Shown piece by piece: positions 8,974 to 52,200 of a stretch of DNA of 64,000 bases; the stretch's first letter is position 1, and every line of letters starts with the position of its first letter. The DNA comes from Selaginella moellendorffii. Its lineage: Eukaryota > Plantae > Lycopodiophyta. The position numbers and the translations under genes were made by a program. A model generated the notes under the pieces. That model made no database searches and was not told the origin of the DNA. It worked only from the letters and a program-made list of their open reading frames with translations. The stretch is taken from assembly GCF_000143415.4 (NCBI RefSeq), contig NW_003314391.1:62001-126000 (forward strand), in the 5' to 3' direction.

Positions 8974-8976
8974 AGT

Positions 8977-26420: not shown

Positions 26421-26559
26421 GTCCCCAGCCAGCAGATCCACCAGGCACATATAATGCTCCCACAGCAACTCCACCTCGCTTTCGCAAACAACACGCAATA
26501 TTGTATTATGAACTTCCATTTCTTGTCCGCATGTCTCTGAGATCGTTGCACTGCTCAAG

Positions 26560-29599: not shown

Positions 29600-29820
29600 A
29601 TCTGGCTCCGGAAGGGCTTTCTGCTCTGGAGTGGTAAATGCGATTCTGCTGCTGAGTCAAGATCGATCATCGATCTTTGTTTGGCTTTGGTGCAGGAATT
29701 GACCGCCGTGCAAGAAGTTTTCAAAGGGGATGTGAAGGATGAATCTGCCGATCCGGTGATTCAGATGGAGAAGTGATCACAGCCGATCATCGGGGCCATC
29801 AACGGGCTGGAAATCACCGT
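29600..29820 (+). pseudogene. Enoyl-CoA hydratase/crotonase fragment
   Basis: GSGRAFCSGV, intron, then LTAVQEVFKGDVKD..PIIGAING. Confidence 0.7.
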
Positions 29821-31646
29821 AAGAGGCTCATGCAGATGGTCACTTCCTGAAAAAGATATGCATCTGGAGGGTTAAATTGTGCCGGTTCGTGCAGCTCTTC
29901 TAGCAATTTAGTGTGGACGATTGGATCGACGTAAAGGTGTATGGTAACAATGATGCAGTTCCCAGCTCGACGTCCCAGGACGGCGAGAGGATCAACTAGC
30001 TCTCTTTATGAGGAGATGGCGAAGGTAACGTTAACGTATTAGCTTCTTTGCAAAGACTTTCAATTGGTGTTTTACTCTTTGATGGCATTTGTAGGAATTG
30101 TCCAGACAAAGCATCGAGATCAACTGTGGAATGTGTGGGCGTCGTCCGATGAGAATAGAGTACGAGATCGAGGTCGCGTCCTGCATTTGTTGGAGGACTG
30201 TGGGTAAGATGTGGAACGGAAATTGATGCGCTTGGTCTGAAGTTTCTGAACCTCTTCTCAAATCAGAACTTAAATATCTATGTACGGTACCCGACGTTGG
30301 ATTTCGGTTGACAAGTACGAAGTCCTACATAAACCCAAGCCAAACAAACTGGAAGAAGTACGAGGGTTACAACGACATCCTTATGACTGTTTTCCAATTC
30401 TACGTGAAAGCAACGGTTCAGGCAGGAATTCCAAAGGTGGCAGATGTTAGCGGGGAGTATGGATGTGTATGAAGTCATGAAATTCTGTATACCCTAAACT
30501 TCAATCCTGGTTTTGCTTGTCTGATCTTTCTCTTCTTTCTAATGTGGACACCTCAGATGCAGGAAAAATCCGAAGGTAGATCAAAGGCGGCCAAATGAAA
30601 TCTCTGCTGGTCAGGTGATGCCTTGGGAGTTTCTGCGTCCAGAGAGCAGCACCGCACGACTGATGTGGCAACCCTGTTCACTGTCCCATTGTTGAAGAGG
30701 GGGATGTTGAGACAGACCAGCTCTATCCGGTAAAGATTGGCAACGTCCAGCTTCCTTGAAAGTTGACGACCGGGAGCGATGTGCGATCCAGTCGACTTCA
30801 AAAAAGTCATGGGGTGTGAACTACAACGACAAACGTGAACATGGACGGTAAAGTTATTTGCTTTATGGAGTTGTATTCTTAACTCCTTATACCAGACTGC
30901 CAAAGGTAGAGAGCCAGGGAAGTGCAAAGACATCAGTGCAAACGAGCTTCAGATGACTCAGTAGTGATTGTGAATGAAGAAACAGATGGATTGGAACATG
31001 ACCACCCGTGATCAACTGATGGCCGTGGAAGAGCATGCGAGTGGACACCGGCTGCCAGGGATGACTTAGAGGATTCAGGACTGAATCTTCAATGGTCATC
31101 TCCATGCACGTTCAGGTAGAAACTCATCTGCAACATTGACTAGTCACTTTGGCTGATCATGGCAAAGAAGTTACAGGCCATGGTGTGGGACATGCAAGAG
31201 CAGGGAGTGGGCTGCAAAAGATGGTGGCTGGAAAGACACAAGCTCCTGTTGCAAAGCAGGACTGCTCGCGATCAAAGAGACGAGGTAATTTTGTTATTTG
31301 GCCTGGAAGGACATGATGCTTAATGAAAGCCAGCACTAATGCTGTGTATGCTTCCACAGTCATATTTTCAGCCTCACGTTGGCCCTTCTTCGTTCCTTCT
31401 TTTTCGTTGGTCTTCTTCTACTTCAGTCTGGGCATAGTCCAGCAGTTAGATGATGATATGTGTAAACGCATCAAGACAGGCATACCTCAGCTATGAATCC
31501 TTCTCTTGCTTCGGCAGCTTCTCCCCAACCCTTCAGAAAGAAAAGCGGAGCAAGAACAATGGATTTCATTTCAACACACCCCTTGATTCATATATGGCTG
31601 TATATATATACAACTTCAATCAAATCAGAAATCACTAGAGATTTGA

Positions 31647-33188
31647 TCACGATTCGGACTGCTTGTCATGTTCATCATTATTCCTACACTCCCCCTTCAA
31701 GCTGAGGGTGCTTGACACTCCAAGTTGATTCCTCAGCTTGATGAATGTGAGCTCTGAAAGTGGCTTGGTTAGAAGGTCCGCCAACTGATATTGTGAAGGA
31801 ACGTATTCCAGGTGAAGATCTCCGGCTGCTACATGTTCGCGAATGAAGTGATGCTGCACGTCTATATGTTTCGTATGAGCATGAAACACAGGATTCTTTG
31901 ACATGGCGATTGCACTTCTGCTGTCGCAATGCAGAATGGTCACATCTGATTGCTGTTGATTGAGTTCTCCAAGTAATCGACGAAGCCAGATGATCTCCCT
32001 TGCTGCTGTACTGGCAGCTACATATTCTGCTTCTGCACTAGAAAGAGCAACCGTCGTTTGCTTCTTGCTTCCCCATGAAACCGGAGCACCAGCAATTATG
32101 CAGCAAATTCCGGAGGTTGAATGTTGTGTATCCAAGTTGCCAGCCCAATCTGCATCGCAGTAAGCTTGAAGAACAAATTTGGATTGACCTGAGCATTTGT
32201 AAACCAGTCCATGAGCAGCCGTTCCTTTCAAATACCTCAAAACTCTCTTCGCCATCTGCCAATGATAACAACTCGGAGACTGTATGTATCGGCTGAGGAA
32301 ACCAACGGCAAAGGAGATGTCGGGGCGAGTCATGTTGGCGAGGTAGAGTAGTCCTCCAACAAGCGATCGGTAGACCGAGGGCTGATCAAATAAATCATCC
32401 ATCTTGCTTGTGAACTTGATGCCAGTGACGACTGGTGTAGCCACGGATTTGCAACTTGTCATGTTGAACTGGTTGAGAAGCTTCTTCACATATTGGCGCT
32501 GTGTGAGGGTGATTGTCCTGTCTGCTTCATCCCTGTCAACTTCCATCCCTAACAGCTGCTGCACAGCTCCTAAGTCCTTCATCACAAACTTGTTCATAAG
32601 CTTGATCTTCACATCCTTCAAAACAGTGTCATTGTTGCTGACAATCAAACAGTTGTCCACATAAACTACTATCACAACAAAGTGATCACCCTGCTGAAGA
32701 AGATATAGATTTCCATCGCTGTTCAACCTCTGCATAAGAAAAGAATCCAAACATTCATACCACTGATGGGAAGCCTGCTTAAGGCCATAAAGAGCCTTGC
32801 GAAGCTTGCAGACGAGTTCGGAGCACTGTGATCCAAAAAGCTCAAAGCCTGGGGGTTGCCGCATAAATATCTCCTCCTTCAAGTTCCCATTAAGGAAGGC
32901 TGTTTTTACGTCCATGTGATGTGCGCACAAACCAAACTCCGCTGTAAAAGCCAGAAGCATTCTGATACTTGTCTGCTTCACAATTGGTGAGAATGTCTCA
33001 TCAAAATCCACTCCAGGAACTTGTGAATATCCTTGAGCAACAAGTCTTGCTTTGTAATGTTGTACCGATCCATCAGGATTTCTGTGAAGCTTGAACACCC
33101 AGCGTGATCCAACAACTTCACGTCCTTCAGGAGCTTCCACCAAGTCATAAGTCTGGTTCTCATCAAGAGAATTCAACTCATCTTGCAT
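31647..33188 (-). CDS. Copia RT-RNaseH reading frame
   Basis: YKARLVAQG, HMDVKTAFLNG, LYGLKQ, YVDN (second catalytic Asp of YVDD mutated), YCDADWAG, KHIDVQHHFIRE. Confidence 0.9.
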   Translation of the reverse strand: MQDELNSLDENQTYDLVEAPEGREVVGSRWVFKLHRNPDGSVQHYKARLVAQGYSQVPGVDFDETFSPIVKQTSIRMLLAFTAEFGLCAHHMDVKTAFLNGNLKEEIFMRQPPGFELFGSQCSELVCKLRKALYGLKQASHQWYECLDSFLMQRLNSDGNLYLLQQGDHFVVIVVYVDNCLIVSNNDTVLKDVKIKLMNKFVMKDLGAVQQLLGMEVDRDEADRTITLTQRQYVKKLLNQFNMTSCKSVATPVVTGIKFTSKMDDLFDQPSVYRSLVGGLLYLANMTRPDISFAVGFLSRYIQSPSCYHWQMAKRVLRYLKGTAAHGLVYKCSGQSKFVLQAYCDADWAGNLDTQHSTSGICCIIAGAPVSWGSKKQTTVALSSAEAEYVAASTAAREIIWLRRLLGELNQQQSDVTILHCDSRSAIAMSKNPVFHAHTKHIDVQHHFIREHVAAGDLHLEYVPSQYQLADLLTKPLSELTFIKLRNQLGVSSTLSLKGECRNNDEHDKQSES

Positions 33189-34224
33189 TACTGAAATCCA
33201 CTTATCTGCATCAGGAGCTTGAATCGCTTGCTCAAAGTTGACTGGTTCAGAAGCTATTTCTGTTGTTGCAAAAGACCATTGCTTGGGATGAGGTGCTCTG
33301 CTTGATCATCCAGATGCTGTCCGCCCATAGTTCTCCACATTGAATGGTAGATCACGTGTGAGCCTGTCGACTTCTCCAGTTCGTGCACGATGAGCAGCAT
33401 CGCCCTGTTCTTCAGGAAGAAAAGATCCAGAGACTGGTGTTGGATGATCGTCTGCTAAAGGAGATGAGGGATAGATGATTGTCAGATCATTGTCATCTTC
33501 ATCACCGTCTTCAACACCATCCCAACTCCATTCTTCCGGAGTCCAGTTCATGTTTTGATCTGAGCTTCCTTTTTCTTGAACATGATCTTTGTAGAGTGTT
33601 CCTTCATCAAAACGAACATCAGTGCTTACAAAAATTTGATGATTACCAGGCTGGTACAGGCGATATCCTTTTGAATTGGAATCATATCCAACAAGAAAGG
33701 CCAACTTGCTTTTGCTCTCCAACTTGCCGAGATGCTCATCCACCCTTTTTGCAAAGCTTAAACAACCAAAACGCTTGAGATGCACCACCAATTGTCTTTG
33801 ACCAGTCCAAAGCTCTTCTGGGATCTTGTTGGGATTGCGAGAATGAGGGAGAAGGTTTTGAACATGCACAGCTGATCTGACTGCTTCAGCCCAGAGGAAT
33901 TTTGGTAGTCCTGATTCTTGAAGGAAGCACTGAACTGCATTCATGATTGTCCTATTCTTGCGCTCAGAGACTCCATTCTGTTGAGGGGTATGAGAGCAAG
34001 AGCACTGATGAAGAATTCCTTATTCAGCACAGAATTGCTGAAAGGACTTGTTGACGTATTCCCCTCTTGAATCAGTACGTAAACAACCAACCCTCTGACC
34101 AGTTTTCACTTCAGCTTCTGCTACAAATTGCTTGAATTTGCTGAAGACTTCATCTTTGTGACGAAGAAAGAAGACGTCCGTGTGCCCGGAAAAATCATCT
34201 GTAAATGTCACAAAATACTTTGTG

Positions 34225-34410
34225 CTCGGGCATCTGATCAAACAGGCATTCCGCCCCAGAATGGTCACCTTCCTGGACATACGCCGTGAGCATGCAATTC
34301 CAAGATACCACGTTCCTCTCCAGCATCGAATCAAATATTCTCTTAGATTCCTTTATTTCCCCATTCTGGAAGTACACTGTGACCAAAGAGTTCCATGAGA
34401 TTACTGAGCA
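34225..34410 (-). pseudogene. PPR fragment inside the Copia integrase
   Basis: VISWNSLVTVYFQNGEIKESKRIFDSMLERNVVSWNCMLTAYVQEG..LFDQMPE. Confidence 0.88.
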
Positions 34411-35813
34411 AACAGTCGCATGGGTCCACAAACATCTGAGTGAATGAGCTGCAAGGGACGAGTGCTTCTAATCACAGCAGGTTTGAAAGTACGACAGGTT
34501 TGCTTGCCAAGAATGCAAGTGTGACATTTTGCTGAACTTTGAAGAACGTGGTCGTTGAAGCCATCCACAAGCTCCTGCTTCTGCATACGCCTGATGAGAG
34601 GGGGATTTGCATGTGCAAGTCGAGAATGCCAGAGAGAACTATCTGCAGTCATGCATATCTCAGGAGCATTTGATTTTTCTCTAGAAGCTATCTCCTTCTC
34701 AAACAGGTTACCACATCTAGGAAAATGCAGTAATGGACGGCCATTTGCAAGAACTTGACATTGATGTTTGGAGAAATTCACATCCAGACCTTCATCCGTA
34801 AGCCTAGCTACAGAAACCAGATTCTTCACTATCTTTGGAACATACCACGCATTCTTCAAGAGCAGAGACTTTCTTCCCAGTGGAACTCGCACATCCCCAG
34901 TTGCGCGAACAGGTAAAATGCTTCCATCTCCCACACGAATGCACTTCCCTTTTGCAGCACGCAACTGCACAAAGTTCGACCTGCTTTGCATCAGGTGTCT
35001 CTCTGAACCTGAATCGATGGTCAGTTTTTCAGAAACGTTTGGAACTGCTACCTCAAATGATGCCACAAGTTCTTGTGTTTCCCCTTCCTGAGCATTTGCT
35101 GCGAGCCCTATGTTCATGCGCTGCAGCCAAGCTGCAACTAGGCAATCCTTGGAGTAGTGTCCTGGCATCCCACAGGTCCAGCATTCCTGTTTGTTCTTGC
35201 CCACAAAACAATCCCGAACTACTGCTTCTTTACCAGAATTCCCTGAATTCTGCTGCTGCTGCGGATTTCCCCTAAACCCGCGACCTCTGCCTCGTCCTCC
35301 TCTTCTGCAGCCTCCTCTGCCTCGATGATTTCCAGTCCATAGAGCTGAATCAGTCCCTGACTGATTGATTGATGCAGAAGCATTTGATGTAGACTGTGAG
35401 ATCAAAACATGGGAAGGCCTCTGATCAAAGTCCACAATCAAACCTCTCGCAGCCAGCTCCGAGCGTAAAGTTTGCTCAGCTTGTTCAAAGTTGAGCGACA
35501 TCATGCCAACGGTAGGGACGAAAGAACTAAAAGAAGAATCTTGCATGGCCTCACAAAGTGCCAGAACTTTCTTGCTTTCGTTGAACGCTGCTGGACTGCC
35601 TTCAAGCTCCATCCACAGATCTTGCATCTTGGCGAGGAACTCTTCAAAGTTCTCGCCTGGATGAAAACGGGTCTCACGAATGCAAGTCTGAACCATGCTA
35701 ATCTTGGAGAGGGAAAGAATAGCATACTTGTTGTGGAGATGAGCCCAGATCTCACAAGCACACTTATGACGCAAACACATCATAAGGGCATCTGCAAGCT
35801 TAGAAAGAATCAA
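34401..35813 (-). CDS. Copia gag-protease-integrase N-terminal frame, truncated by the PPR insert
   Basis: CWTCGMPGHYSKDC, IDSGSERH, WHSRLAH, LIHSDVCGPM. Confidence 0.88.
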   Translation of the reverse strand: MILSKLADALMMCLRHKCACEIWAHLHNKYAILSLSKISMVQTCIRETRFHPGENFEEFLAKMQDLWMELEGSPAAFNESKKVLALCEAMQDSSFSSFVPTVGMMSLNFEQAEQTLRSELAARGLIVDFDQRPSHVLISQSTSNASASINQSGTDSALWTGNHRGRGGCRRGGRGRGRGFRGNPQQQQNSGNSGKEAVVRDCFVGKNKQECWTCGMPGHYSKDCLVAAWLQRMNIGLAANAQEGETQELVASFEVAVPNVSEKLTIDSGSERHLMQSRSNFVQLRAAKGKCIRVGDGSILPVRATGDVRVPLGRKSLLLKNAWYVPKIVKNLVSVARLTDEGLDVNFSKHQCQVLANGRPLLHFPRCGNLFEKEIASREKSNAPEICMTADSSLWHSRLAHANPPLIRRMQKQELVDGFNDHVLQSSAKCHTCILGKQTCRTFKPAVIRSTRPLQLIHSDVCGPMRLFAQ

Positions 35814-36343
35814 TCCTTTTGCTCAAGACTCCTTCTTCTCCAGCGCAGCTTGTTCCCCTGGATCAAGCTGCTGTCAAGCTGCTGCAACAGAGGCACGAAT
35901 TGCCTCTTCATCCACGACTTCTCCTTCCACCGAAGTTGAAGCTCCCAACGCAGCAGGGGCTCACCACATACGAGCATCTGCAGCGATTGTCGGTGGTGAA
36001 ACGATTTCCCAGAGTTCTTCCATCTGCAGCACACACATCATTTTCTCAGACCAGGTGTTGAACCCTCTCCTCCCATCAAAGGCAGTGACTCCCTGAAGCA
36101 AGATCAATCCAACTTTGCTGCAGCTCATGATGTGAGGCACAAAGAAAGGAGAAGAAAGAGTTCAGAAACTAAGCTCCGATACCAAGAAAGAAAAGCGGAG
36201 CAAGAACAACAGATTTCACTTCAACACACCCCTTGATTCATATATGGCTGTATATATATACAACTTCAATCAAATCGGAAATCACCAGAGATCTTATCAC
36301 GATTCAGACTGCTTGTCGTGTTCATTATTATTCCTACACCTTC

Positions 36344-37575
36344 TTGCTTAAAAAGAGTGAACACAACAAAGACATCATGCCTCTCCCTTGTCCTGACGCA
36401 TTATTGTCTTTATTCGATATGTCAGCAGGAATTGTCACGTCCAATGATGCAAGTTGGTTTTCAGTCATGAACCTCATGATTGGCGCCTTGAAGCGGTTGC
36501 CCAAGACGGTTGCAGGAGAAGTTTTTGCTGTCCTGCAGCTCCAGCGACTTAGTCGTGTTGGGCTACGTGTCGGTGTCTCTTTGGGTGTCCAACGAGGATG
36601 GCAGGTGCCCCACGAACCAGAACCACCACGAATTACCGGGTGTTTTTTCAGGTTGACGTGCAATACGCGCAATACGCCTCCTGTTGCGACTCAGTGAGTT
36701 TGGGCTACACAATCAGGGGCTACAGCCGGGCAAGGGACGCATGGGCGTTTTGGCATTTCAAGTCGTTGCCCCCACTTCCGCCGGAAGGAGGTTCGGATGA
36801 TGCAGGATCGGTGTATGGCAGGCTGGACCCGTTCATGTACCGGTCCAAGCTGATGGCAGCAGGCATTGTGGTTGTGGGGAAACACGCTGGTGGTGTGCCC
36901 TTCGCAAGGCCTTGCTTCGCTCCAAAGTGGATGGTCATCGTGGAGGCGGCCGATGAAGAAGCTGATGAGCAGCAGCTGGAGTGGACGATTGTGTCCAGCA
37001 TCGATGTGAGAGGCTTGTGCAGGAACGTGGAGCCCCATCACCTGCTTCCTTGCAAACGGGCTAACAACATGCTCTTTCTCCACTTGTTGGACCGACCGGT
37101 GGCCTTCAATCTGGACACTCGTGCTTGGCATTTGCACGTCCCTCGTTGGAACGTGAACCGAGAAGAGTCCGTATGGAACGTTGCCTACGTTCCCAGTTTA
37201 ACTGCTCCGCCTGACAACGACGGCCGAGTAGAGAGTTTGCGGCAAACTGGAACCTGGCCGCCTGGATGCTTTTGGATATGCCCGGAATGGGCATCTGGAC
37301 AGAGCCAAGGAGATGTTTCGTTTCAAATTGCCGGTGAGGGATCTGGTTTCTTGGAATGTCATGCTTTCCGGATGATGAATTGCGTGGAGGAGGCGAGGGC
37401 AGTGTTCGAGGAATCCCCGCAGCGGGATCTGGTGTCGTGGAACTCGATGCTGATGTTGTATGCCCGGAACGGTCACGCAGACGAGGCTAGTCAGATTTTC
37501 GGTGTGATGCCTCAGCAGGACGTATTTCGTGTGTTCTGCGAGATCTCAAAGGCGTCTTTGAAACGATGCCCTTAA
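36344..37575 (+). pseudogene. F-box-associated-like fragment fused to a PPR fragment
   Basis: AGIV..VMNxMTGALKRLP resembles F-box-associated repeats (weak match). EARAVFEESPQRDLVSWNSMLMLYARNG is a PPR motif. Confidence 0.5.
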
Positions 37576-38196
37576 ATTTTCATGCCTCTTGCCCTAAATT
37601 AATATTGATAAACTATACGATTTTAAAGCGTATTTTAGAATGCAAGTCAGCTAAACTAAACTAAAACAAAAAATTAGGGGGTTGCCAGGATTCGAACCTG
37701 GGGATAGGTTTATTCCTACCTGGTGACATAATTATTTGGAGATTATTCCAAGTATAGAAAATACAGGGTATTAGGGCAAGCGATTTTCTGACATAAATCA
37801 TTATTAAGTAGGCCCTAATTTTAGAAGCCTGGCTATGGCGGTGCATTTGTATTCGTGCTTAGAGGAGGCGTCGATCGATCATCCAGGTGAGTTGAGGAAT
37901 TAGTGAGCAGTCTTCAGCTATCAACAATCAAGAATGTCTCCTCTCATTCTGGTGGAGAAGAGTGCGGCCAAAAAGGCACTGAATGCGCTCACCAAGTCGA
38001 TGCTAGAAGGTGCGGCAGGATTTTTCCTGTTGCACAGCTGGTGCGGCCGGAAAAATCCTGCCGCCATTTTGGTGCGACCAAAAACTTAAATGTTTTTTAA
38101 GTAACATTCAGGACAATTTGAGCTTGTTTCTAAATCGATTTTTAGAAAAATGTATTTTCAGAGTTTGTCGAAGATTTGTCTGAAAGTTCCCGACTA

Positions 38197-38270
38197 TTAC
38201 GCAAGAACGTTGTAAGGGTTGAGAATGCCTTTAGGATCCAAGAGCTTCTTCATGTTCTTCATCAATTGCA
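38197..38270 (-). pseudogene. Last exon of an FAD-linked oxidase (D-2-hydroxyglutarate dehydrogenase-like)
   Basis: VQLMKNMKKLLDPKGILNPYNVLA*. Confidence 0.65.
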
Positions 38271-39436
38271 CCAAGGGAAAGCTTATCAGAAAAAAACCAA
38301 GGAAGTGCTGATTATTTACGGATTTAGGGCTTCTGCTGTAATGAATTGCGTGAGCTTTCGTCTGCACCTTTGTGATCTCGATGAGGAGATAGAACAGTTC
38401 ATTTACAGTAGGCAATGGATGACAATACTGATCTATTATGAGTGACTGAAGATCAACTAATAACAAAAAACTAAAGAACGAAGAAGGTTTACCTCATCAA
38501 AAGCAAAGGGTTGAGTTCATGGCACCGAGATTCAGTATAATCTGCTTGATTATATATCAAATTGCAACATTCTTGGAAAATTAAAAGATATCCAATTACC
38601 TCATCAAACAGAGGAACACTTCCTCCAATTAGTCCAGTGTGACCAACTTGAGAAACCTAATTTACTACTGTAGCAAAGTATTTCCGAAACCTTCATCCAC
38701 AATTTACAAACTAAATCTAGTTCACACCTGATTCGTGGTATGTGGACGAAGCAGTAGGCGACTAGAACCCTTAGACTTGCGCATCTAGTCGGTGTCCAGT
38801 TCATCCTGATCACAACCTTGTATGATTGAACAGAAGAGGAACTCGCATTTATGAGCTCTCACTCAATCCACCTTGAACTGTACCAAAAACGAAGAAAAAT
38901 GATCAGAAAAGAACCGGACGAATCCAACGATTATTGGATACGTACCAATTCATTGCAGAAGCCTTCCAGCCGGATCTTGAGCGCATTTTCACTGAAGAAC
39001 CCTAAAGTAGAAGACATTTTATATAATTTTTTAAAATAATTGCATGTTGTTTGAGGGATATTCTTCCTGCTTGAACCGATCACACCCGCTTACTGAGACT
39101 CCAGTGGGTCATTCAGCTCGTGAATTTTTTGCTTCTTTTTGTCAAAATTCAAATTTGACTTACCTAGAGTAGTCGTTTGCTGTTTGGGAAGTAATCTCTA
39201 AACCTGCATTGCTTGGACCTCGGATTCTGTCGAATCCTCACTCTCATACATTTGAACAAGCAAATTACACGGTGTTTTCGCTGAGGCGAAAAGCATCAGA
39301 AATTGCGGGTGAATTCCTGTTCCTTTGGAAGGAATGATAAAATATAAATAATATAGTATTTATTAGATATATTTAATATTCAATACATTTAATATATATT
39401 CAAAATATATCACAATACATAGCATATATATGGTAT

Positions 39437-41998
39437 TTATGCTGATGCCAGGAGCATGGTGTTACGCTCGGCCTCAAAGTTGGGTGCCACAGCCTGGTTA
39501 TAAATCTTGACACCTTTCAAGGAACCTGTGAAGAAGGAATTGCCCGAGCGAGAATCCCAACCCAGAAACACAGGGATAGATGCATCCAAGCTCCTCACCA
39601 CAGTGCCACTTTTAGAAGCTGACAGCTCGCCATCAATGTAGATCCGCCCCACACCGTTATCACGCACGGCCACAATGTGGTGCCACTCGCCGTCGTTGAT
39701 GGCAGAAGACGCAGAGAAGTCGAACTGAGTCGCAGAATTCCCATACACAAAGAAGTGAGGCTTGCCATGGACCAAGTAGAGCAAGTATTCGCCATTGAAA
39801 CCGTTTGTTGTGCTGCTTTGCGGGCTCCTTTGCTGGATGATGATCGCTCGTGAAATTTTACCAGCACTTGGGGGCACCTTCACCCACGCATGGATGGAGA
39901 AGGATGTCTTGCCAGACAGAGAGGGTTTTGTTCCTAGCACCACCTTGCCAGCGCCGTCGAAGGTAAGTCCGCCGTCGGGATTCCACGTCGTTGATCCCTC
40001 GATGCTCCCGGTTGCTCCGTTCCAGGACGAATCCTTTGCAGAGACTCCACTCTTGTCATCCAGCTTCCACCATGCCACGAGAGCTTCTGGCCAGGTGCTG
40101 AGATACCTGATCTCTTCCTGTTCTAGAGCTCGGCTGTAGATCTTTGCCCCCATCAAGGAACCCGTGAGGAATGAGGTGTTGTCGCGCGCATCAGCACCCA
40201 TGAACACGGGGATAGTTACATCCAAATACTTGATGTCGCCGCTTGCAGAGGCCGATAGCTTGCCATCAATGTAGATCTGGCCCTCGGCCTGATCACGAAC
40301 GGCTACGATGTGGTGCCATCCACCGTCGTTGATGGCAGCTGAGGCAGAGAATCTGAATTGATCTCCGGAGTCCGAAAACACCCAGAACCGGGGCTTGCCT
40401 TCAAACAGACTGAGCTGATATCCTCCGTCGGAGCCACTTGTGATGCTGCTCAGTGGACTCCTTTGCTGGATGATGACTTGTTCTGAAGTACTGGTAACAT
40501 ATATCCACAAGGCGATGGAGAAGGATGTCTTGCCTCTGATGGAGGGACTTGCGCCGAGTGACACCGTCCCTGCACCTCCAAAGGAAAGCCCATTGCCGTT
40601 GTTCCAGGATCCTCCTTTGAGTACCCCATTCGCTGCATGCCCAGACGAATCTTGCACTTTCGAGCCGCTCGCCTCATCCATCTTCCACCAGCCCAGGAGA
40701 GCAGCGGGACGGAGGGTTACGTATCCTGTGGAGCTTCTCAAGAGGGAATTCTGGATAGTGTACTTGAGATGGTCGAGAAACAATCCTGCTGCCAAAGACG
40801 GCGTGTAAGTAATCTGGTTCCAGCTAGAGTTTGAGATGCTAGTGGCACTGCCCAAAGCCGAAGGAGACTGGACCGAGGCGATCGTGAGTGATTTGACGTC
40901 GGCATCCAGATCGTTGGCCAGAACGTCCAGGCTCTTGAAGCAAGTGCAACAGGTGCAATTCTGCGGGATGTCGATCGCATCCATATTCGCACGGGGTGGA
41001 CGGGCAACCGTAATGTTGCTTGCAAGGCGAGGAACACCAGACTTGTAGCGCAGGATCTTGGCAAGCTCGGAAGACGAGAAACGGGAGAGCTGGTTGTCGG
41101 ACATGATAGTCGGTCCCTCGGGCCGTCCACCACCTTCGTAGTGGCTAGATCCCCAGTTGTGACCAGCCTCGTGCCGCCAGATGACCGTGAAATCTCCGTT
41201 TGCAGTAGCGCTGATGGCCGAGTATCCCACCGGCTTAGCCGCCGTTGCTACCCATGCCAAGCCTCCGTTAGCCCGAGGATGGGCAACCAAGCAGAGCTTG
41301 TGAGTGTTGCCTACCACGGAAGCAATGGCACCTCTCCATTGTTTCTCCACCCTGTCGAGCAGGACTCCGGTCTTGGGGTTTCCATATGGATCTTGGGACT
41401 GACTTGCACGGATCACCACTTTCCCAATCGTGTGAAGAATGGAAGCATCTCGGAGGAAGGGCATATTCGCAGACAGGATGGAGAACTCTGCCATGTTCAC
41501 TGTGTTCTCGACGCTAGAACCTGTTGAAAGGTAGTACAAGTAAGTAGCATCCACTCCGACTTCCGCTACGAAGAGTACAGCGTCGGATTTGGAAGCAGGA
41601 ACGAGGCTGGTTGGCCACTGGGGATTCGAGTTCCAACCCGTGGTTCCCCTCACCGAGGCCTCGCCTCCGGTGCTGCTCCACTCCACCCCGTTCTCGAAGC
41701 TGATTCGACAAAGCAGAGTTCCGTTGACGTTGAGCAAGGCCGTGGCCATGGCACCGGGGTGGTCTCTTACTGAACCCAGGTACGTACGAGAAGGCGGGAT
41801 GTTGTCGTATGAGAGAAAGCTGCCACTGTCATTCTGCACTAGCACGCCAAAGTTGGGACTGCGGATTGAGAAGGGCTTCAAGTCCACCGTCACTTTGTCC
41901 CCGCCACTGCTGATGGTTCGAACCAGATCATCCTGCTGCTCGGCACTTCTTGCGACTAGGAAGAGCAGAAGAAGAGTGATGAGAACAAGGCGAAACAT
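39437..41998 (-). CDS. Secreted metzincin (reprolysin/M12-like) metalloprotease with cadherin/Ig-like and two LamG domains, 853 aa, intronless, copy A
   Basis: Signal peptide MFRLVLITLLLLFLVARSA. Zinc motif HEAGHNWGSSH (41141-41173) with Met-turn TIMS. LDVLANDLDAD..LTI repeat. Two WWKxD..DSS..NG...DGxWHHIVAVRD..IYIDG LamG repeats. TATAAAA at 42035-42041. Confidence 0.9.
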   Translation of the reverse strand: MFRLVLITLLLLFLVARSAEQQDDLVRTISSGGDKVTVDLKPFSIRSPNFGVLVQNDSGSFLSYDNIPPSRTYLGSVRDHPGAMATALLNVNGTLLCRISFENGVEWSSTGGEASVRGTTGWNSNPQWPTSLVPASKSDAVLFVAEVGVDATYLYYLSTGSSVENTVNMAEFSILSANMPFLRDASILHTIGKVVIRASQSQDPYGNPKTGVLLDRVEKQWRGAIASVVGNTHKLCLVAHPRANGGLAWVATAAKPVGYSAISATANGDFTVIWRHEAGHNWGSSHYEGGGRPEGPTIMSDNQLSRFSSSELAKILRYKSGVPRLASNITVARPPRANMDAIDIPQNCTCCTCFKSLDVLANDLDADVKSLTIASVQSPSALGSATSISNSSWNQITYTPSLAAGLFLDHLKYTIQNSLLRSSTGYVTLRPAALLGWWKMDEASGSKVQDSSGHAANGVLKGGSWNNGNGLSFGGAGTVSLGASPSIRGKTSFSIALWIYVTSTSEQVIIQQRSPLSSITSGSDGGYQLSLFEGKPRFWVFSDSGDQFRFSASAAINDGGWHHIVAVRDQAEGQIYIDGKLSASASGDIKYLDVTIPVFMGADARDNTSFLTGSLMGAKIYSRALEQEEIRYLSTWPEALVAWWKLDDKSGVSAKDSSWNGATGSIEGSTTWNPDGGLTFDGAGKVVLGTKPSLSGKTSFSIHAWVKVPPSAGKISRAIIIQQRSPQSSTTNGFNGEYLLYLVHGKPHFFVYGNSATQFDFSASSAINDGEWHHIVAVRDNGVGRIYIDGELSASKSGTVVRSLDASIPVFLGWDSRSGNSFFTGSLKGVKIYNQAVAPNFEAERNTMLLASA

Positions 41999-43257
41999 TT
42001 TCTTGGATCTGCAGAGAAACGAATGCAAAGTGGGTTTTATAGTCGCTAGTTTGGCTGTAGTGACACTGGGCCCAAGCGAAGGCTGTGCGCCACATATATT
42101 GATATACGCTCACAGCCAAAGGCTCGCATATCTGATATATGTCACCATATGTCACAGACTCGAGTCGCGACATGCCCGATGGTACACTGGTCCCAAACCA
42201 AGAGATGACTATGGTACGGGTACGTCTATATTCGATTCTCTAGATATTTTACAGCTAAACATAACTTGACAACAAAAGTACTGACTACTCTTTGAGACGT
42301 GTTTGTGAGTTTGGTGTGGATGGACGGGTAGGTGGCACATATATCCAGGTCAGCGCTGCTTATCATCTAGATCTGTGGTGAGAGCTTGGGATCTTTAGGT
42401 ACTTAGATACGAATATCTTGCATTGCTCCAGTGCCGCTTTCAAAATGACCAGCACTGATCTTCAAATCCAGCAAACCAGCGGAGAAATAAACACTTGACA
42501 AGAAATCACAAGTTCCTTTTTAAGTTGGGAGGCTTGATTCGCTGGGCAAGACGTCCAACATGAACTTGGCCATGATTGGCTTAAACACACAAGGCCCATC
42601 AAGTTTGAATGTGCAAGCGCCGGGATTGACAGATGATTGACGTAAACCATCCAAGCAAAACAAACAAGTTCATGTCAGGTGCTTAATCCCACTAATATAC
42701 ACCCATGCCAGTGTGTAATCAACCTGGTACAATCCTCAGCTCTTGTAGCGCTGGTGAGCCAAACGTGCATCTTACCGTGCTTTGGCAACGTGTTTAACCC
42801 GGGGCAGCAAAACTCTCTCCATTCGAAATGAGCCACGTGGCATAAAGGCCGCATCTCGCCACGTGGCCGGGTCACGGTTGATGAGATTGACGATGATGGG
42901 TGAATGCAAAAAATATTTCTGAATATTTAAAAGATGCTTTTAGAATCTTTTCATTTTTTTAGGTTTTTTAAGTTTGAAGCTGACAAACGCGTTTGGAGCA
43001 TAATTTGGCGTTTGCAAACGCGTTTGCGTCTATGCGTTTGCAACGTTTGTGCGTCTGCCTGGTAAGTATGTATCAAACCCTACCCGGTGTGGCTTCAGTC
43101 GTGATTGCTGCAAGATCGTTCACCTTCTTCATGCTTGGTGTTTGGCTTCAGCTTTCGGAGAGCAGAAAAAAGACTGTTAGAAGCTTGGAACTTGGAAGTG
43201 GTTTTCTGATAAAAATTAAATCTTTCTTGGCTGTGAACAATGGTAACTGACTACTAC

Positions 43258-47190: not shown

Positions 47191-47692
47191 TGGAGGCTCC
47201 GATATCTTCCAAATGGCTCGCAAAGATAAAGTATCCTTCATCTTGAGGAATTTATGTGCTTTTCGATTTTACGTCTACCAGCAGTGTGGACATACTGGAT
47301 AATCTTCGCGATTCTATCTATGGGCACGTAGAAATCGATGTCTCCTGGAGTCTCTTCGTAGCGGTCTTGCCCCAAAAAGGGTGTCTAAGTTTCGATCCCA
47401 TTTATAATCTAGCAAATCAAAAGAAACACGCAAACTCCTAAAAATGTCACCGTGTTGGAACGTTGAAAAATCATAAACTGAGCTAAATTTCAATATTTAC
47501 GTGTATAGTAGTGTAGTCGATGTAGTAGAAATTTTGCATTCTAGCCGCAATGTGGAGTCATGTACTAGCTGAGTAGTCAAGATAAGCGTCGCTCCCAGGA
47601 CTATATAAACAAGGCCTTTCCAGAGCTCAACTCATCTCTAGTTAAAGTTGTTTACTCATTTTCTTCTTGGTTATTTCTTGTTCTATCTCATT

Positions 47693-48121
47693 ATGGCATT
47701 TCGCGAGGTTTTCTTCCTGTGTATGCTGGTCTCGACCCTCTCCATCACCCAGGTAAGAAACTCTCATTCACTTGTCCCGCAAGAAGCTCACAATTTGGAT
47801 ATCTTACTCTTACAGGCTTGCCAGTTTTCTCGATCCTGCACTGATATCACCTTCGACAGGAATTCGACCGTGATGAGAGCCATTTGTAGCACATCCAATT
47901 TGGAAAGGAGGAACGCCTCCATCGATGTGAACAATTGCGTGGGCAGCAGCAATGGTGTCCTCGACTGCTCATCCAACTTTGCCTCACGATGCATCAACAT
48001 CAGCTTCAATGGGCTCAACGTGGCTGCCCGTTGCAACCGCGGGGATGGCGTTCTCGTCTCTTCCACTCGCAACCTCGACGATTGCATCCAGAACGTCGAG
48101 GGAGTTCTCCAGTGCTGCTAG
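47693..48121 (+). CDS. Secreted CVNH lectin, copy B; exons 47693-47752, 47816-48121
   Basis: As copy A, but retains a TATATAAA box at 47602-47609 and a pyrimidine-rich leader. Confidence 0.9.
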   Translation: MAFREVFFLCMLVSTLSITQVRNSHSLVPQEAHNLDILLLQACQFSRSCTDITFDRNSTVMRAICSTSNLERRNASIDVNNCVGSSNGVLDCSSNFASRCINISFNGLNVAARCNRGDGVLVSSTRNLDDCIQNVEGVLQCC

Positions 48122-48406
48122 ATCCTTTTGGATGATCAAATTATATCCATATGATGAAAGATGAATAACTGAGTGATCTCCCACATGATCTCTCCTTGTT
48201 TGGCACGTATGTGTCGCTGTTCTAATCAAATAAAACTTACTCACGGAAGTTGTGGGGCTTTTAAGACAGACTTACTTGTACAACTTTTTTTCAATTTGTA
48301 TAATGAAAATACTACAAAGACAAATCGATTTATATTAAAGGTATATTATTTCTAATAAATGACAATTTTAAAGTCTATGGTCCCTCCTTATTAATGTGCC
48401 GTTTCA

Positions 48407-48836
48407 TCAAGGATTAAAATCATAAATGTAGTCGACATGGGCTTGCTGCTCCTGATCACCAAAGATGATTGACAACACACGATCATACATGTCAAGAATA
48501 TTGTCTTCAAATACAGGATTATTTTACCTCTGGTTCGGCAATTTTTGGGGTGGAATTGGACAATGGCGACCAATCCAGCAGATTAGCAATCGTAAAAAAG
48601 ACAAAAAGATTAAATCACGTACGAATCAGGTTACACGCTTGGACAGACACACATGCAAGCGAGTGCAGACATGGACCATGATGTTTCAAAAGAAACACAG
48701 AGATCATCAAATCCAATCGACGCATATTCAATCGAGATTGAAGAACAGGCGTACCTGTTTCATTCTTCACTGGCCGAGAGGTCACAGTAGCAGCCACCAA
48801 GAGGACGAAAAAGAAAAAACTTAGTGTGCGAGACAT
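48407..48836 (-). pseudogene. Phytosulfokine-like precursor, copy B; exon-2 acceptor deleted
   Basis: A ~12-bp deletion at ~48591 removes the AG acceptor and the first codons of exon 2. Confidence 0.65.
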
Positions 48837-49099
48837 GATCTAGAGTTCCTCTTGCAAAGAAAATATATCAAAGAGAGACCGATGATATGATCAGCGTTTG
48901 TGTTGATATCGTATATATGCTGCCGAGAAAAGGTCAAGCACTGAAGAACCGCCACGTCGACATGCAAAGCGGCAGTTTTGACTGGATGGCTGGAAACCAG
49001 ACTTCCAGTTAGCTTTTCCCTCTCCAATTTTACTGGAATTCACTCGCGATAATTCTTTTCATATGCTAATGTTTATTAACTTCTGCACTTTCAAAATTC

Positions 49100-50175
49100 T
49101 AGAAGCGTTGCCATCAAAATGGCTAGAGCTCCCAAGATCCTGGAGGGACTTCCACTGTTTCCACCCGATCTTTCGTCAGCTTGGAAAGCAGGATAGTTCC
49201 GGCACTCCAGTGATTTCACAATGTCTCCAAGGTGACTATCACCATACACATCTTGGTTGCGGTACCAGTTCTTCACCTAAAGAGAAAAAGAGCAAAATCA
49301 AGAGGTTGAGCTCTCGGGGTTACCTCCAATAGGCCGTGACCAAAGCTTCCATCTCGCAGCGTGCTCCATTCCGGCTGCCTGTCCCAGCAGAATTGATTCG
49401 CCGCTGGCCCAGAGCCGAAGTTTTGAGCACAAACTCCACCGGATTGGGGGACGTTGTCCTCAGGCTTGGGGCACTTCCCCGGATCGTCAGCGTGCTCCGT
49501 GTCCACTCTCGTTCTATTGCCGCCATCTCCCACCATGATGTAGAGCGCGGGTCCAGCTCGTAAGTGTAACTCTGTTCATCCTCTCATAGGCATGGACCTG
49601 GAAGAACACCAAGGATTCCTGTCGAGATCGAGAAGAGAGAGGGATTTACATGGCCATTGGACAATGTCGACGCCGGCATTGTAGAGAAGCTCCTCCATTT
49701 CGAGACGCATGCACTCGACCTCGCGGTAGTGGGAGCTGTAGCTATTGTACCACGGCGGATGCCACGATCCAGGGCGTGAGGAGCCTGTTGACGCGATCCT
49801 CCCAGCATCAGGAAGTGGATGCCGCCGACATCGAACGAGTACTAAAGGCTGGAACCTGGCCTTGTATGTTTTGCCCGGGGCTCGATCTCGTGGTTGGCAC
49901 CTCCTCCATGAATCTGGGAGCAAGGAAATCAGGGATTGGATTGCGGATTTATAGTCTTGCTCTCTCTCACCTCCCCTGGGGATGATAAGTCTCCCGGATT
50001 GGCGCGTCTGGAAATGCACAGCTAAAGCAGGGCGATCCAGTGCCATTGGTGATGTATTGATCCGAGTATGTGAGATCGCCCACCATGAGGAGGAGCGAGG
50101 GATCGTTTCGGATGACGTGATCGACCGTGGCGCTCGAGTTGTAAGTGAGTCCCAGATCGTACCAGCTCAAGATCT
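49100..50175 (-). pseudogene. Purple acid phosphatase pseudogene, copy B
   Basis: DLGLTYNSSATVDH and WHPPWYNSYSSHYREVEC. Confidence 0.85.
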
Positions 50176-50856
50176 CCCTCCTCACCTGGAACAGCACAAA
50201 CAAGGAATGTCAAGCTCTCTCGCTCGAGCTCTGGAAGAGTTACCTCGTCTGCACTGCTCCGGCTCTCAAACTCTTGAATGTAAGTTGGAGAGCCCTTCGA
50301 ACAGCACAGTGCCTGATTGCCCGACTTGGGCGATGCATTTGATGACCGAGCCGCAAAAACTTCCCTCCTCCTCGTCTTGTTGGTCATCGAGATCTCGCCT
50401 CCTAGAGCAGCAGCAGCAGTAGTAGCAGCCATGGCTTCCATCCCAGCAACTAAGTGGCTGATTTCTCGATGCCACAAAAGGAAGCTTTAAAATAATCCTC
50501 CTCGAAGAAAGAAGAAACTCGTCACCTCACTGGAGGTGTCGCTTGATCTTCATCATGTCCCAGTCCTTCTCTGCGAGAGCTCCAAGCATGAGGATGGACT
50601 GCGCGCCGGCTCGAGCTCGCCCACCATCTCCGCGGCGCGCTCCGCCCGCTCCACGTCGCCATGTATCCGGCACCCGCTCAGCAACGTCATCCAGCCCGTG
50701 ACGCACTGCTCGAACGGCATCGTCTCCACGAGCTCCTCGGCGTCCTGGAGCCAGCCGCAGCGTCCCCAGCCAGCAGATCCACCAGGCACATATAATGCTC
50801 CCACAGCAACTCCACCTCGCTTTCGCAAACAACACGCAATATTGTATTATGAACTT

Positions 50857-52200
50857 TGCTCCATAACAACAGATTCGACCATCTGTGGGCGTAGCCGTCT
50901 TGAATAACCATGCGAGTGCTTCTGAGGCTTTGTTCACAGCGGTAGCTCAAGTGTGCAATAAATTGGTATCGGTCACATTTGACAATGGCTTCTAGCGTGA
51001 TCTTATTTCTGCCGATGTTGTGCCACGCTTACGTTTGAAGCTGCTACCACACCCTCAACCGTACGAGGTCAAATGGTTGCAGAAGAGCCATGTTCTTCGA
51101 GTCACACAACAGTCCCGTGTTTGGTTTTCAATCAACAGTTCTCCGATGAAGCGCTTCTGGATGGACGTCGCGGGAATCATCCTCAGCAAACCATATCAAT
51201 GGATGAGGCGACCTCAGTACGACGCATTTGCAAATACATACTTTTTGAGGAAGGACGATAAGAGGTGGCTACTGCGGGCGTCGTCACCTACAAACAAAAC
51301 TCCACAATCGTTATTGATTTCTGCAAAAGAACCGGTCGTTAACATCGGAGAATGGTGGCATTGCTTTTGTGGCGTATCTCAGAGAATGAAGCGAAAGTTC
51401 TGAACACGTTCAAACTGCTGCACATGGATTATCAGCTGTTGATCGTCAGCGTATCCAGGCAGTCGTTAATCGCTTTCGAGATGTTTTACCTGAGGAACTT
51501 CCATTCGTGCTATCGATCTGAACAAGATTGAGTTTGTTCCTGGAGCGAGACTTCCAAATCATCGACCTTACAGAATGTCGCAAACAGAAGCGACTGAGAT
51601 GATATGACAGGTACGAGAGTTGCTGAGTCCCAAAGGTTTGATTCAGCGCAGTGTTTCACCCTGCTCAAGTCCGCTGTTATTTGTTCCAAAGCCCGACGTT
51701 CTTTGAGGATGTGCAATGATTTTCGTCTCATCAATGATATATTGATCCGCAAGTGCCATCCTATTCCGACCTCTTCGACCTCTTCGATCTTGCTGCGGGC
51801 GCTTCTGTGTTCAACAAATTGGATCTCCGTAGTGGATATCATCAAGTGTGCATTGCTCAAAACAATACTGGGAAGACTGCATTCTCAACACCTGAAGGCC
51901 TGTGTGAGTGGTTAGTCATGCCTTTTGGTTTGTGCAACGCACCTGCGACATTTGTGAGGATGATGAACGATGTATTTCGCAACGAGATTGGTAAGTTCGT
52001 CGCCATTTACTTCGACGATATTTGGTATATAGCAAGTTTGTGGAGGAGCATTTTCGTCATCTGGAGACTGTTCTCGACAAGCTTCGGAATGAAACATTAT
52101 TTCTACATCCTAAGAAAAGCGACTTTGGGCTGTCGGAGGTAACTTGGGATTTAGACTTGCTGCAACAGGAACCACAGTTGATCCGGATAAAGTTCACGCA
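50857..52200 (+). mobile_element. Gypsy protease-RT remnant, copy B
   Basis: LDLRSGYHQ, MPFGLCNAPATF, YFDDI. Confidence 0.85.

Follow-up and report, generated by a model that had tools for sequence, protein, structure and literature searches.

The 64,000-nucleotide stretch of the Selaginella moellendorffii genome analysed here (the window) contains a gene that probably derives from an old transfer of a bacterial gene of verrucomicrobial type into the Selaginella lineage, where it was remodelled, amplified, transcribed and kept under selection, and whose product would act as a secreted metalloprotease zymogen. An earlier note on this DNA had suggested horizontal transfer followed by domestication, and this suggestion is upheld by the bacterial identity of the labelled homologues, the phylogenetic tree, the plant setting of the gene, its unspliced transcription and the selection acting on it. 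The 853-residue open reading frame described in that note, with a signal peptide, an HExxHxxGxxH motif, a Met-turn, a DVLAND repeat and two LamG domains, was also recovered, with the strand corrected to minus: the ATG lies at 41998 and the stop codon at 39437–39439. This frame, termed copy A, has the following features.

39437–41998, minus strand: copy A coding sequence of the putative secreted metalloprotease, 853 codons plus stop, uninterrupted
41942–41998, minus strand: signal peptide, about residues 1–19 (read by eye; model helix 2–15)
41594–41941, minus strand: β-rich prodomain, about residues 20–135 (model strands 25–117; alignable with its counterparts in zymogen ADAM17 and profragilysin)
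41009–41593, minus strand: catalytic domain with predicted adamalysin fold, about residues 136–330 (Pfam, model and structure matches)
41141–41173, minus strand: zinc-binding motif HEAGHNWGSSH, residues 276–286 (from sequence; present in five of five copies)
41102–41104, minus strand: Met-turn M299 in PEGPTIMS (family pattern PEG[PSA]TI[MN]S)
40703–40996, minus strand: Big_9 Ig/cadherin-like domain with DVLANDLDAD, residues 335–432 (Pfam and model)
40091–40693, minus strand: LamG_3 domain 1, residues 436–636 (Pfam, model and bacterial comparison)
39464–40090, minus strand: LamG_3 domain 2, residues 637–845 (55% identical to LamG_3 domain 1)

The n-, h- and c-regions of the signal peptide are all present in copy A when read by eye (MFRLVLITLLLLFLVARS/AEQ). 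The protein carries six N-glycosylation sequons. Residues 276–286 fit the metzincin pattern HExxHxxGxxH; across 30 aligned family members, H276, E277 and H280 never vary, and conservation of H286 reaches at least 90%. At the Met-turn position, a minority of relatives carry Asn instead of Met. DVLAND itself spans residues 358–363, and N362, D363 and D365 are invariant in the family, giving the motif DxLANDxD. In canonical adamalysins, the third zinc histidine is immediately followed by Asp (HExxHxxGxxHD signature). This hallmark of M12B is absent from the plant protein, where the position is occupied by Tyr287 (HYEGGG), which is also the consensus residue of the bacterial family.

Comparison with Pfam identified two stretches of Laminin_G_3 (E 6.2e-50, 169.7 bits; cut-off 27.6) and a Big_9 domain at residues 356–429 (34.1 bits; cut-off 23.6). 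Reprolysin_3 passed narrowly (22.7 bits versus a cut-off of 22.4), and Reprolysin_5 (24.1 versus 27), Reprolysin_2 and Reprolysin_4 fell under theirs. Pfam detected neither Peptidase_M10 (E values up to 0.1) nor a disintegrin domain, and the PRCGxPD motif is absent from the sequence. No conserved Cys was found in the prodomain columns of the 30 homologues (C97 is not conserved), and a cysteine switch is thus unlikely. In structure comparison, the AF2 model of residues 1–435 (pLDDT 89.6) resembles zymogen ADAM17 (E 2.7e-13) as well as profragilysin-3 and snake-venom metalloproteinases. Its catalytic domain has the predicted metzincin fold, comprising a β-sheet upper subdomain and an active-site helix, and as a predicted fold compares with snake-venom and ADAM catalytic domains at TM 0.75–0.79 and rmsd 3.0–3.5 Å. 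The model of the LamG pair resembles the LG pairs of neurexin, laminin and Gas6.

With the M12B proteases (ADAM, reprolysin and snake-venom enzymes) it shares the predicted catalytic fold, the HExxHxxGxxH motif, the Met-turn and an N-terminal prodomain; however, sequence identity is 13–17%, disintegrin and cysteine-rich domains are absent, and Tyr replaces Asp. Profragilysin-3/metalloproteinase II of Bacteroides fragilis likewise joins a secreted bacterial-type prodomain to an adamalysin-like catalytic domain (Foldseek E 2.6e-10 to 6e-09), but it is 10–13% identical, has no Ig or LamG domains and belongs to a different sequence family. Plant M10 matrix metalloproteinases of the At1-5-MMP type are also secreted metzincin zinc endopeptidases, but their catalytic domain is of another family, with homology to the Selaginella protease only at clan level. 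Could the product instead be a binding or adhesion protein that works through its LamG and Ig domains and retains a catalytically silent fold? The marginal Pfam peptidase scores and the Tyr in place of the adamalysin Asp would be consistent with this, but Tyr is the family consensus and not a plant-specific loss, the first three catalytic residues are invariant with H286 and the Met-turn context nearly so, and all five plant copies retain them intact. Furthermore, replacements between copies A and B (see below) are found in both the protease module and the LamG part, and leave the zinc motif and Met-turn untouched. We consider an inactive product quite unlikely and retain the assignment as a candidate active metalloprotease.

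Turning to the origin of the gene, homologues outside S. moellendorffii among 5.8 billion sequences searched reach at most 51% identity; those with a label are all bacterial, and those without one derive from metagenomes. Word-indexed searches, run with the full-length protein, with its N-terminal module and with the LamG half, found no other eukaryotic homologue, and none appeared among the labelled matches of the exhaustive search, a result bounded by the collections searched, which may not cover other Selaginella or lycophyte genomes. Searches for fragmentary orthologues in other plants with the N-terminal module alone or the LamG half alone also found none. Both halves of the protein have their best matches in the same bacterial proteins (P0002–P0004), and the closest labelled sequences for both are all Verrucomicrobiota. 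Two further matches proved to be bacterial: P0224 (320 residues, a single LamG domain, 56% identical to LamG_3 domain 2), which had been a candidate plant relative and lies on a contig with tightly packed same-strand genes, and P0081 (49% identical), from a setting of packed genes with 60% GC.

A maximum-likelihood tree (LG+C20+F+G4 PMSF), the check proposed in the earlier note, recovers the plant clade with support of 100/100 and nests it in a bacterial clade of 56 rows with support of 91/95. The other 52 rows of this clade comprise 33 Verrucomicrobiota, one member of Abditibacteriota and 18 rows without a tree label; Planctomycetota, Pseudomonadota and Actinomycetota lie outside it. For several of the 18 tree-unlabelled proteins, the source of the sequence gives the name Luteolibacter or Haloferula. 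When the tree is rooted on Actinomycetota, the plant clade falls deep within bacterial diversity, closer to Verrucomicrobiota than those other phyla are. Placement within the 56-row clade is weak: inner nodes have low support, and an AU test did not reject the plant clade as sister to the verrucomicrobial clade (delta lnL 1.65, p = 0.46). The plant stem is long (1.0–1.5 substitutions per site), and long-branch effects are therefore possible. Together, the sequence comparisons support a plant clade lying within, or sister to, a Verrucomicrobiota-dominated subfamily; the naming of a donor genus was dropped in view of the weak inner nodes and the sister position left by the AU test.

This latitude bears on two other accounts of origin. 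Transfer from a donor outside Verrucomicrobiota, such as an unsampled bacterial phylum, or by an indirect route with a viral, fungal or other eukaryotic intermediate, would be compatible with the weak inner nodes, with an AU test that permits a position outside the sampled clade, and with a family that crosses phyla, members of Abditibacteriota and of bins labelled Bifidobacterium and Gemmatimonadota being nested in other clades. However, the nearest labelled sequences for both halves are verrucomicrobial, no relative emerged when 2.9 million viral contigs were scanned with the family alignment, and no eukaryotic intermediate was found, and we regard such a route as unlikely. Ancient vertical inheritance from early eukaryotes or from the ancestor of plants, with loss everywhere but in this lineage, is very improbable. 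The long stem and host-like composition speak for long residence in the lineage, and the AU test permits a position outside the sampled verrucomicrobial clade, but no labelled match to the whole protein or to either part comes from another eukaryote, the Actinomycetota-rooted tree places the plant clade deep within bacteria, the gene has no introns, and very many independent losses would be required. Transfer of a verrucomicrobial-type gene remains our preferred reading.

The verrucomicrobial relatives are uncharacterised proteins annotated as 'LamG-like jellyroll fold domain-containing' or 'zinc-dependent metalloprotease family', such as Luteolibacter ambystomatis WP_211630775 and proteins of Haloferula sp. 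BvORR071 and the Haloferula MAG JBBCJF01. Their N-terminal module (signal peptide, prodomain, M12-like domain and Big_9) is colinear with that of the plant protein and 44–51% identical, the zinc motif and Met-turn are as in the plant, and the LamG_3 domains are 44–53% identical. They differ in being longer (1300–2400 residues), in having three distinct LamG domains, and in adding He_PIG, DUF1349, PA14 or autotransporter-associated repeats; in the plant protein, by contrast, the second bacterial LamG is duplicated and the other LamGs and the C-terminal region are lost. The earlier description of the domain string as typical of bacteria thus holds in part: all relatives are bacterial or metagenomic, but the exact plant string is atypical of the closest bacterial proteins, which have 1300–1500 residues with three LamG and further domains. 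The plant gene further departs from its verrucomicrobial relatives in host-like codon composition and a eukaryotic promoter.

Copy A lies in the first of two duplicated units, with copy B in the second.

57674–60235, minus strand: copy B coding sequence, 853 codons, 99.0% identical to copy A; the basis of SELMODRAFT_448687 (954 residues)
23307–42756, no strand assigned: first unit of a segmental duplication, from a CVNH gene to a PPR fragment, the FAD-oxidase remnant and the protease gene
47687–61019, no strand assigned: second unit of the segmental duplication
31535–36338, minus strand: Ty1/copia retrotransposon in the first unit only (RVT_2, gag-pre-integrase)
38197–39083, minus strand: decayed, exon-like remnant of an FAD-linked oxidase C-terminus, just downstream of copy A

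The neighbours in the window are plant DNA: OMT, CCR-like, P450 and PPR genes and the copia insertion. Three further intact copies lie on two other scaffolds, two of them about 30 kb apart on GL377617.1 and one on a third scaffold, which brings the total to five intact copies of 853 codons, spread over three scaffolds; each of the five retains the zinc motif and Met-turn and sits within several kilobases of shared plant flank. There are no assembly gaps (N runs) within or between the two duplicated units in the window. The ORF has a GC content of 0.55 versus about 0.42 in its immediate flanks, and its GC3 of 0.62 falls in the range of native neighbours (0.53–0.62) and below that of bacterial relatives (0.69–0.90); this host-like GC3 indicates that the transfer is old. 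The FAD-oxidase_C piece was considered as co-transferred bacterial DNA and rejected, as it is a decayed, exon-split remnant resembling plant-type pseudogene debris.

These data establish that the gene is physically integrated in the S. moellendorffii genome. An ORF from an endophyte or surface bacterium, misjoined to plant scaffolds, might be suspected from the absence of introns, the bacterial domain string, the bacterial nearest relatives and the GC step at the ORF edges. Contamination or misassembly of this kind is effectively refuted by the five copies in shared plant flank, by the copia insertion and the PPR and FAD-oxidase remnants within a duplicated unit free of N gaps near the gene, by the low identity to any bacterial protein, by the host-like GC3, plant-type TATA box and AT-rich 3′ end, and by the occurrence of the sequence in at least eight independent studies of S. 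moellendorffii. A separate question is whether copies A and B are two haplotypes of a heterozygous assembly set side by side. The units diverge by about 2%, which is similar to the haplotype divergence of this assembly. However, GL377617.1 also carries two copies and a third scaffold another, about 5 kb of unique sequence without an N run separates the units, and the copies fall into four clearly distinct sequence types, exceeding what two haplotypes of one locus can give. The haplotype explanation is accordingly improbable, and we treat the arrangement as a tandem segmental duplication.

The promoter and transcript were delimited as follows.

42035–42041, minus strand: TATAAAA box of copy A, starting 43 nt upstream of the ATG with 36 nt between; identical in copy B
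60272–60278, minus strand: TATAAAA box of copy B, conserved with copy A
39383–42005, minus strand: minimum extent of the transcript, unspliced, with a 5′UTR of at least 7 nt and a 3′UTR of at least 54 nt (X1, X4 and X8 contigs)

The box-to-ATG distance matches the roughly 36 bp read earlier from the sequence, and the comparison then made with a native gene also holds, the CCR-like gene having TATAAA 40 nt upstream of its ATG versus 43 nt for the protease gene. Expression, put forward as a check, is evident as RNA-type contig coverage over the ORF in three independent studies (X1, X4 and X8; runs presumed to be RNA), whose contigs match copy A or its allele type, reach a depth of up to 1226 over 39383–42005 only, and have zero flank depth and no splice joints. 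In a DNA-like run, by contrast, flanks and ORF were covered equally at 3–4x. Deep coverage of the ORF and short UTRs without a joint thus points to an abundant unspliced mRNA, with its bounds taken from assembled contigs that carry neither strand nor exact ends; the contig end at 42005 is about 30–36 nt downstream of the TATAAAA box. The annotated 954-residue model with a 3′ intron (SELMODRAFT_448687) was rejected in favour of the 853-residue ORF, as the RNA contigs contain no such joint; the annotated model wrongly splices the protease ORF to the exon-like FAD-oxidase remnant.

Copies A and B differ at exactly 25 nucleotides; 12 of these changes are replacements and 13 are silent, and the ORF is free of indels, in agreement with the 12 replacements and similar number of silent changes first counted by eye. 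Their dN/dS is 0.29 (binomial p = 0.0023), which bears out the purifying selection proposed from those counts; other pairs give 0.21–0.37, except the near-identical A/L001 pair, with 0.79 on seven differences. The duplicated flanks, previously described as full of indels, carry 3–16 indel events per segment and 1.6–3.1% substitutions. The protease gene is kept by purifying selection.

We propose that an ancestor of S. moellendorffii took up, from a bacterium, the gene of a large, secreted zinc metalloprotease with several domains. The donor protein would have belonged to, or branched next to, a subfamily that today is almost confined to Verrucomicrobiota (Luteolibacter, Haloferula, Akkermansiaceae). 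Once in the plant nucleus, the gene would have acquired a TATA promoter together with an AT-rich 3′ end, drifted toward host codon composition, been trimmed to the prodomain, catalytic domain, Ig domain and one LamG domain present twice, and multiplied through segmental duplication, with at least five intact copies now present in the diploid assembly. It is retained by purifying selection and abundantly transcribed as an intronless mRNA. The signal peptide may direct the product into the secretory pathway as a latent zymogen, in which the N-terminal β-rich prodomain would mask the active site in the manner of ADAM17 and profragilysin; speculatively, the conserved F101–E102 motif could be what blocks the zinc. 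Upon removal of the prodomain, zinc held by H276, H280 and H286, with E277 as general base, could support peptide-bond cleavage. The Ig domain may serve as a spacer. The two LamG jelly-rolls in tandem could bind a glycan or protein ligand, directing the enzyme to a substrate in the cell wall or apoplast, or on microbes. This domain content suggests secretion, proteolysis, glycan binding and possibly a role in defence.

To our knowledge, the adamalysin-fold, M12-like protease class is otherwise missing from plants. Bacterium-to-plant transfers that have been well documented and in which the gene is intact, amplified, under selection and highly expressed remain few in number. Full-text literature searches turned up no publication that mentions these genes or this protease family in Selaginella by name, and large horizontal-transfer screens of land plants may list the family without a name. 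The phenomenon itself is not of a new kind, as bacterium-to-plant transfer in Selaginella has published precedent: a bacterial GH25 muramidase was transferred to Selaginella and then vertically inherited within the genus, being detected in five of six species (Metcalf et al. 2014, eLife, PMC4241558). Both are secreted bacterial hydrolases gained by the Selaginella lineage, but the enzyme classes differ.

For public annotation, the result corrects models of 954, 959, 874 and 861 residues, which add exons that are unsupported by RNA (SELMODRAFT_448687) or, with the 853-codon ORF being intact, unneeded. More broadly, the case illustrates the trimming and rebuilding of a large bacterial surface protein after transfer, and five near-identical copies with an obvious catalytic knock-out residue make it tractable for testing. 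A further-reaching account is possible, and we offer it tentatively: land plants may possess no other adamalysin-fold protease family, and this one would derive from a soil or aquatic verrucomicrobium, having been rebuilt by LamG duplication and loss of the bacterial anchoring part, amplified, and abundantly expressed as an extracellular enzyme that Selaginella uses on microbial surfaces or on its own wall glycoproteins, a second 'borrowed weapon' beside the GH25 lysozyme. If this is true, the spread of the gene within the genus could date the transfer.

The protease ORF described earlier at 39437–41998 is real and uninterrupted over its 853 codons, with its strand corrected to minus (ATG at 41998, stop at 39437–39439); a second copy (copy B) lies at 57674–60235. 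The translation of the first (copy A) starts MFRLVLITLLLLFLVARSAEQ, a typical signal peptide as judged by eye, and contains the zinc motif HEAGHNWGSSH (residues 276–286), the Met-turn PTIMS (M299) and the segment LDVLANDLDAD (residues 357–367). Pfam identifies two Laminin_G_3 domains (E 6e-50) and Big_9 (34.1 bits; cut-off 23.6), together with marginal Reprolysin matches (Reprolysin_3 22.7 versus a cut-off of 22.4); the domains and motifs named in the earlier note are thus all present. Its TATAAAA box is also in place, at 42035–42041, 36 nt ahead of the copy A ATG and the same in both copies, and the spacing in the CCR-like neighbor is comparable (TATAAA 40 nt 5' of the ATG, versus 43 nt for the protease gene). 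The protein has six N-glycosylation sequons. A cysteine cluster, N-C-T-C-C-T/S-C (residues 347–353; window ~40940–40960, minus strand), lies in the linker that joins the catalytic to the Ig domain, in a region unconserved in the bacterial family alignment; judged from the alignment, the cluster may be a plant-side addition.

The protease gene lies inside a segmental duplication, in a window with the following features:

23307–42756 and 47687–61019: segmental duplication units, protease gene inside
23314–23742, plus strand: small gene for a CVNH (cyanovirin-N homologue) lectin (Pfam E 1e-20); further copies near 47690 and at 19370–19798 of L002, another locus of the assembly
31535–36338: Ty1/copia element (gag-pre-integrase, SH3-like, RVT_2), its ORFs broken into three pieces
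38197–39083, minus strand: decayed, exon-split remnant of an FAD-linked oxidase C-terminus, also at 13850–14639 of L001 and 13654–14261 of L003 (further loci of the assembly)
in the window: plant-type O-methyltransferase with dimerisation domain
in the window: NAD-epimerase/CCR-like gene
in the window: P450
in the window: PPR fragment

The copia element is present in the first duplicated unit only and therefore inserted later than the segmental duplication. Three further protease copies occur in the assembly, one on GL377572.1 and a pair ~30 kb apart on GL377617.1. Each is an unbroken 853-codon ORF whose protein is 98.4–99.4% identical to that of copy A, and they have several kb of flank in common with the window copies. 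The zinc motif and Met-turn are intact in all five. That the ORF is contamination is very unlikely, given the plant genes, copia element and duplicated flanks that surround it and its occurrence at five loci on three scaffolds; that the copies are an artefact of haplotype collapse is also very unlikely, because the extra copies sit on GL377617.1 and GL377572.1 with several kb of shared flank. The sole N run of the window is at 3510–3651. The best database match is SELMODRAFT_448687 of S. moellendorffii, which is annotated copy B: identical to the ORF up to residue 845, it is then spliced to downstream pieces to give 954 aa.

Several other features of the window were recorded. One CVNH lectin gene stands at the start of each duplicated unit; among plants, this domain too is patchily distributed. 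At several paralogous loci, the FAD-linked oxidase remnant (…LLDPKGILNPYNVLA) lies just 3' of the protease gene. An inverted repeat (17617–19235 versus 22523–20963; arms of ~1.6 kb, 97–99% identical) encloses ~1.7 kb of AT-rich DNA (GC 0.35–0.36). Two related, imperfect tandem-repeat arrays (4045–4584 and 9972–10496) lie within a duplicated block of ~6 kb (with segment 2927–3509 matching 8973–9555) of strongly negative GC skew, where ORFs in several frames are probably repeat artefacts.

Between copies A and B there are exactly 25 nucleotide changes (12 replacement, 13 silent) and no indels, while their duplicated flanks diverge by 1.6–3.1% with 3–16 indel events per segment; the counts and the indel-rich flanks noted earlier both hold. 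The dN/dS of 0.29 (Nei–Gojobori; dS 0.0215, dN 0.0062) and a binomial test with the neutral proportion of replacement sites as its expectation (p=0.0023) bear out the purifying selection then suggested. Pairwise values among the five copies are 0.21–0.37, except for copy A versus the L001 copy, a pair with just 7 differences that probably represents alleles. Copy dS (~2%) is the same as the substitution divergence in the flanking DNA, and the copies are therefore young duplicates kept intact while the flanks gained indels.

Turning to the origin of the gene, all 63 matches outside S. moellendorffii in a word-indexed search of 5.8 billion proteins were bacterial or metagenomic (25–46% whole-protein identity), those named being Luteolibacter, Haloferula, Akkermansiaceae and Abditibacteriota. 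With residues 1–435 as query, exhaustive phmmer of 1.84 billion representatives recovered 627 relatives (E<=1e-10); apart from self matches, the top ones reach 50–51% identity and, where labelled, are all Verrucomicrobiota. In the ESM Atlas, the closest cluster consists 100% of bacterial proteins. Queries limited to the N-terminal module or the LamG half, short fragments admitted, returned no intermediate-identity or eukaryotic relatives, and a scan of 2.9 million viral contigs gave no viral ones. Two short high-identity matches were rejected as plant relatives, both lying on gene-dense bacterial contigs. A scan of GTDB species genomes yielded 80 labelled loci, mostly Verrucomicrobiota, with Planctomycetota, Actinomycetota, Pseudomonadota and others among the remainder.

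A quick ML tree (82 rows) placed the plant copies in a 39-row clade (SH-aLRT 95) with 33 Verrucomicrobiota. In a more careful tree of 68 rows (LG+C20+F+G4 PMSF), the plant sequences form a clade (support 100/100) inside a 56-row clade (91/95) whose other 52 rows comprise 33 Verrucomicrobiota, 1 Abditibacteriota and 18 proteins unlabelled there; outside it are Planctomycetota, Pseudomonadota, Rhodothermota and Actinomycetota. As inner nodes are weak and an AU test did not reject a sister relationship between the 52 bacterial rows and the plant clade (delta lnL 1.65, p=0.46), our claim from these alignments is kept to a placement within or sister to a Verrucomicrobiota-dominated subfamily, with no donor genus. 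The long plant stem (1.0–1.5 substitutions per site) and host-like GC3 (0.62 for the ORF, 0.53–0.62 for native neighbors, 0.69–0.90 for bacterial relatives) suggest that the transfer was old and the duplications came recently. With all labelled outside relatives bacterial, the horizontal transfer proposed in the earlier note stands: it is well supported that the gene for a putatively secreted adamalysin-fold protease really did pass from a bacterium to the plant and was domesticated there.

Whichever half of the plant protein is compared, its best matches are the bacterial proteins P0002–P0004, and the gene therefore arrived as one unit. Each of these is ~1490 aa long, with LamG_3 domains at three positions, one He_PIG Ig domain and a DUF1349 at the C-terminus. 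When the LamG domains were placed in one tree, each bacterial position formed its own clade; plant LamG1 and LamG2 came out as sisters (SH-aLRT 97), joined to bacterial position 2 (SH-aLRT 95). The plant protein therefore carries LamG#2 in duplicate and is missing LamG#1, LamG#3 and the C-terminal region. This remodelling took place either after transfer or already in an unsampled donor.

By sequence search, the protease stretch is present in at least 8 studies, and contigs of four sequencing runs (X1, X4, X8, X20) were mapped onto window 38200–43200. In X1, X4 and X8, from three studies, contigs are confined to 39383–42005 (maximum k-mer depths 1226, 455 and 6.5), with zero flank depth and no joints, and match copy A or its allele type (0–2 differences). 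This transcriptome-like coverage indicates abundant unspliced mRNA from copy A or its allele type, the runs being presumed RNA and the contigs strandless. The minimum 5'UTR is 7 nt and the 3'UTR 54 nt, contig-based values from which exact ends are not resolvable; the contig 5' end lies ~30–36 nt 3' of the TATA box. The 3' intron of SELMODRAFT_448687, a splice onto the FAD-oxidase remnant, was rejected, as the RNA-type contigs lack the joint. X20, labelled as a different organism (D), covers ORF and flanks alike at 3–4x, as a DNA run would, with 1–3% differences and loose ends at 40577, 42500 and 42756; it may have come from a diverged accession or from a close relative that also has the gene.

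An AF2 model of residues 1–435 (pLDDT 89.6, pTM 0.90) comprises:

residues 25–117: beta-rich N-terminal domain
residues ~140–325: alpha/beta catalytic domain
residues 335–432: Ig-like domain

Its top Foldseek match is zymogen ADAM17, prodomain plus catalytic domain (E 2.7e-13), followed by B. fragilis metalloproteinase II, profragilysin-3 and many snake-venom and ADAM catalytic domains (TM 0.75–0.79, target-normalised; rmsd 3.0–3.5 Å). The LamG-pair model (pLDDT 85) matches LG pairs of neurexin, laminin LG4–5 and Gas6. The motif, Met-turn and predicted fold mark the protein as a metzincin; it shares the predicted adamalysin fold with canonical M12B proteases but is not a canonical member, having Tyr after the third histidine, no cysteine switch, no disintegrin domain and marginal Pfam scores. 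With plant M10 MMPs it has only the clan in common. From these folds and motifs we infer a secreted, latent zymogen that would be activated by prodomain loss; H276, H280 and H286 would hold the zinc used to cut peptide bonds and E277 would act as base, while the LamG pair would direct it to a glycan or protein ligand. Apoplast location, glycan targeting and a role in defence are hypotheses.

Full-text literature searches turned up nothing published on this gene. As a phenomenon, its closest parallel is the GH25 muramidase that Selaginella gained from bacteria, detected in five of six species of the genus (PMC4241558). The protease transfer adds to the known bacterium-to-plant transfers, an event of a kind already known.
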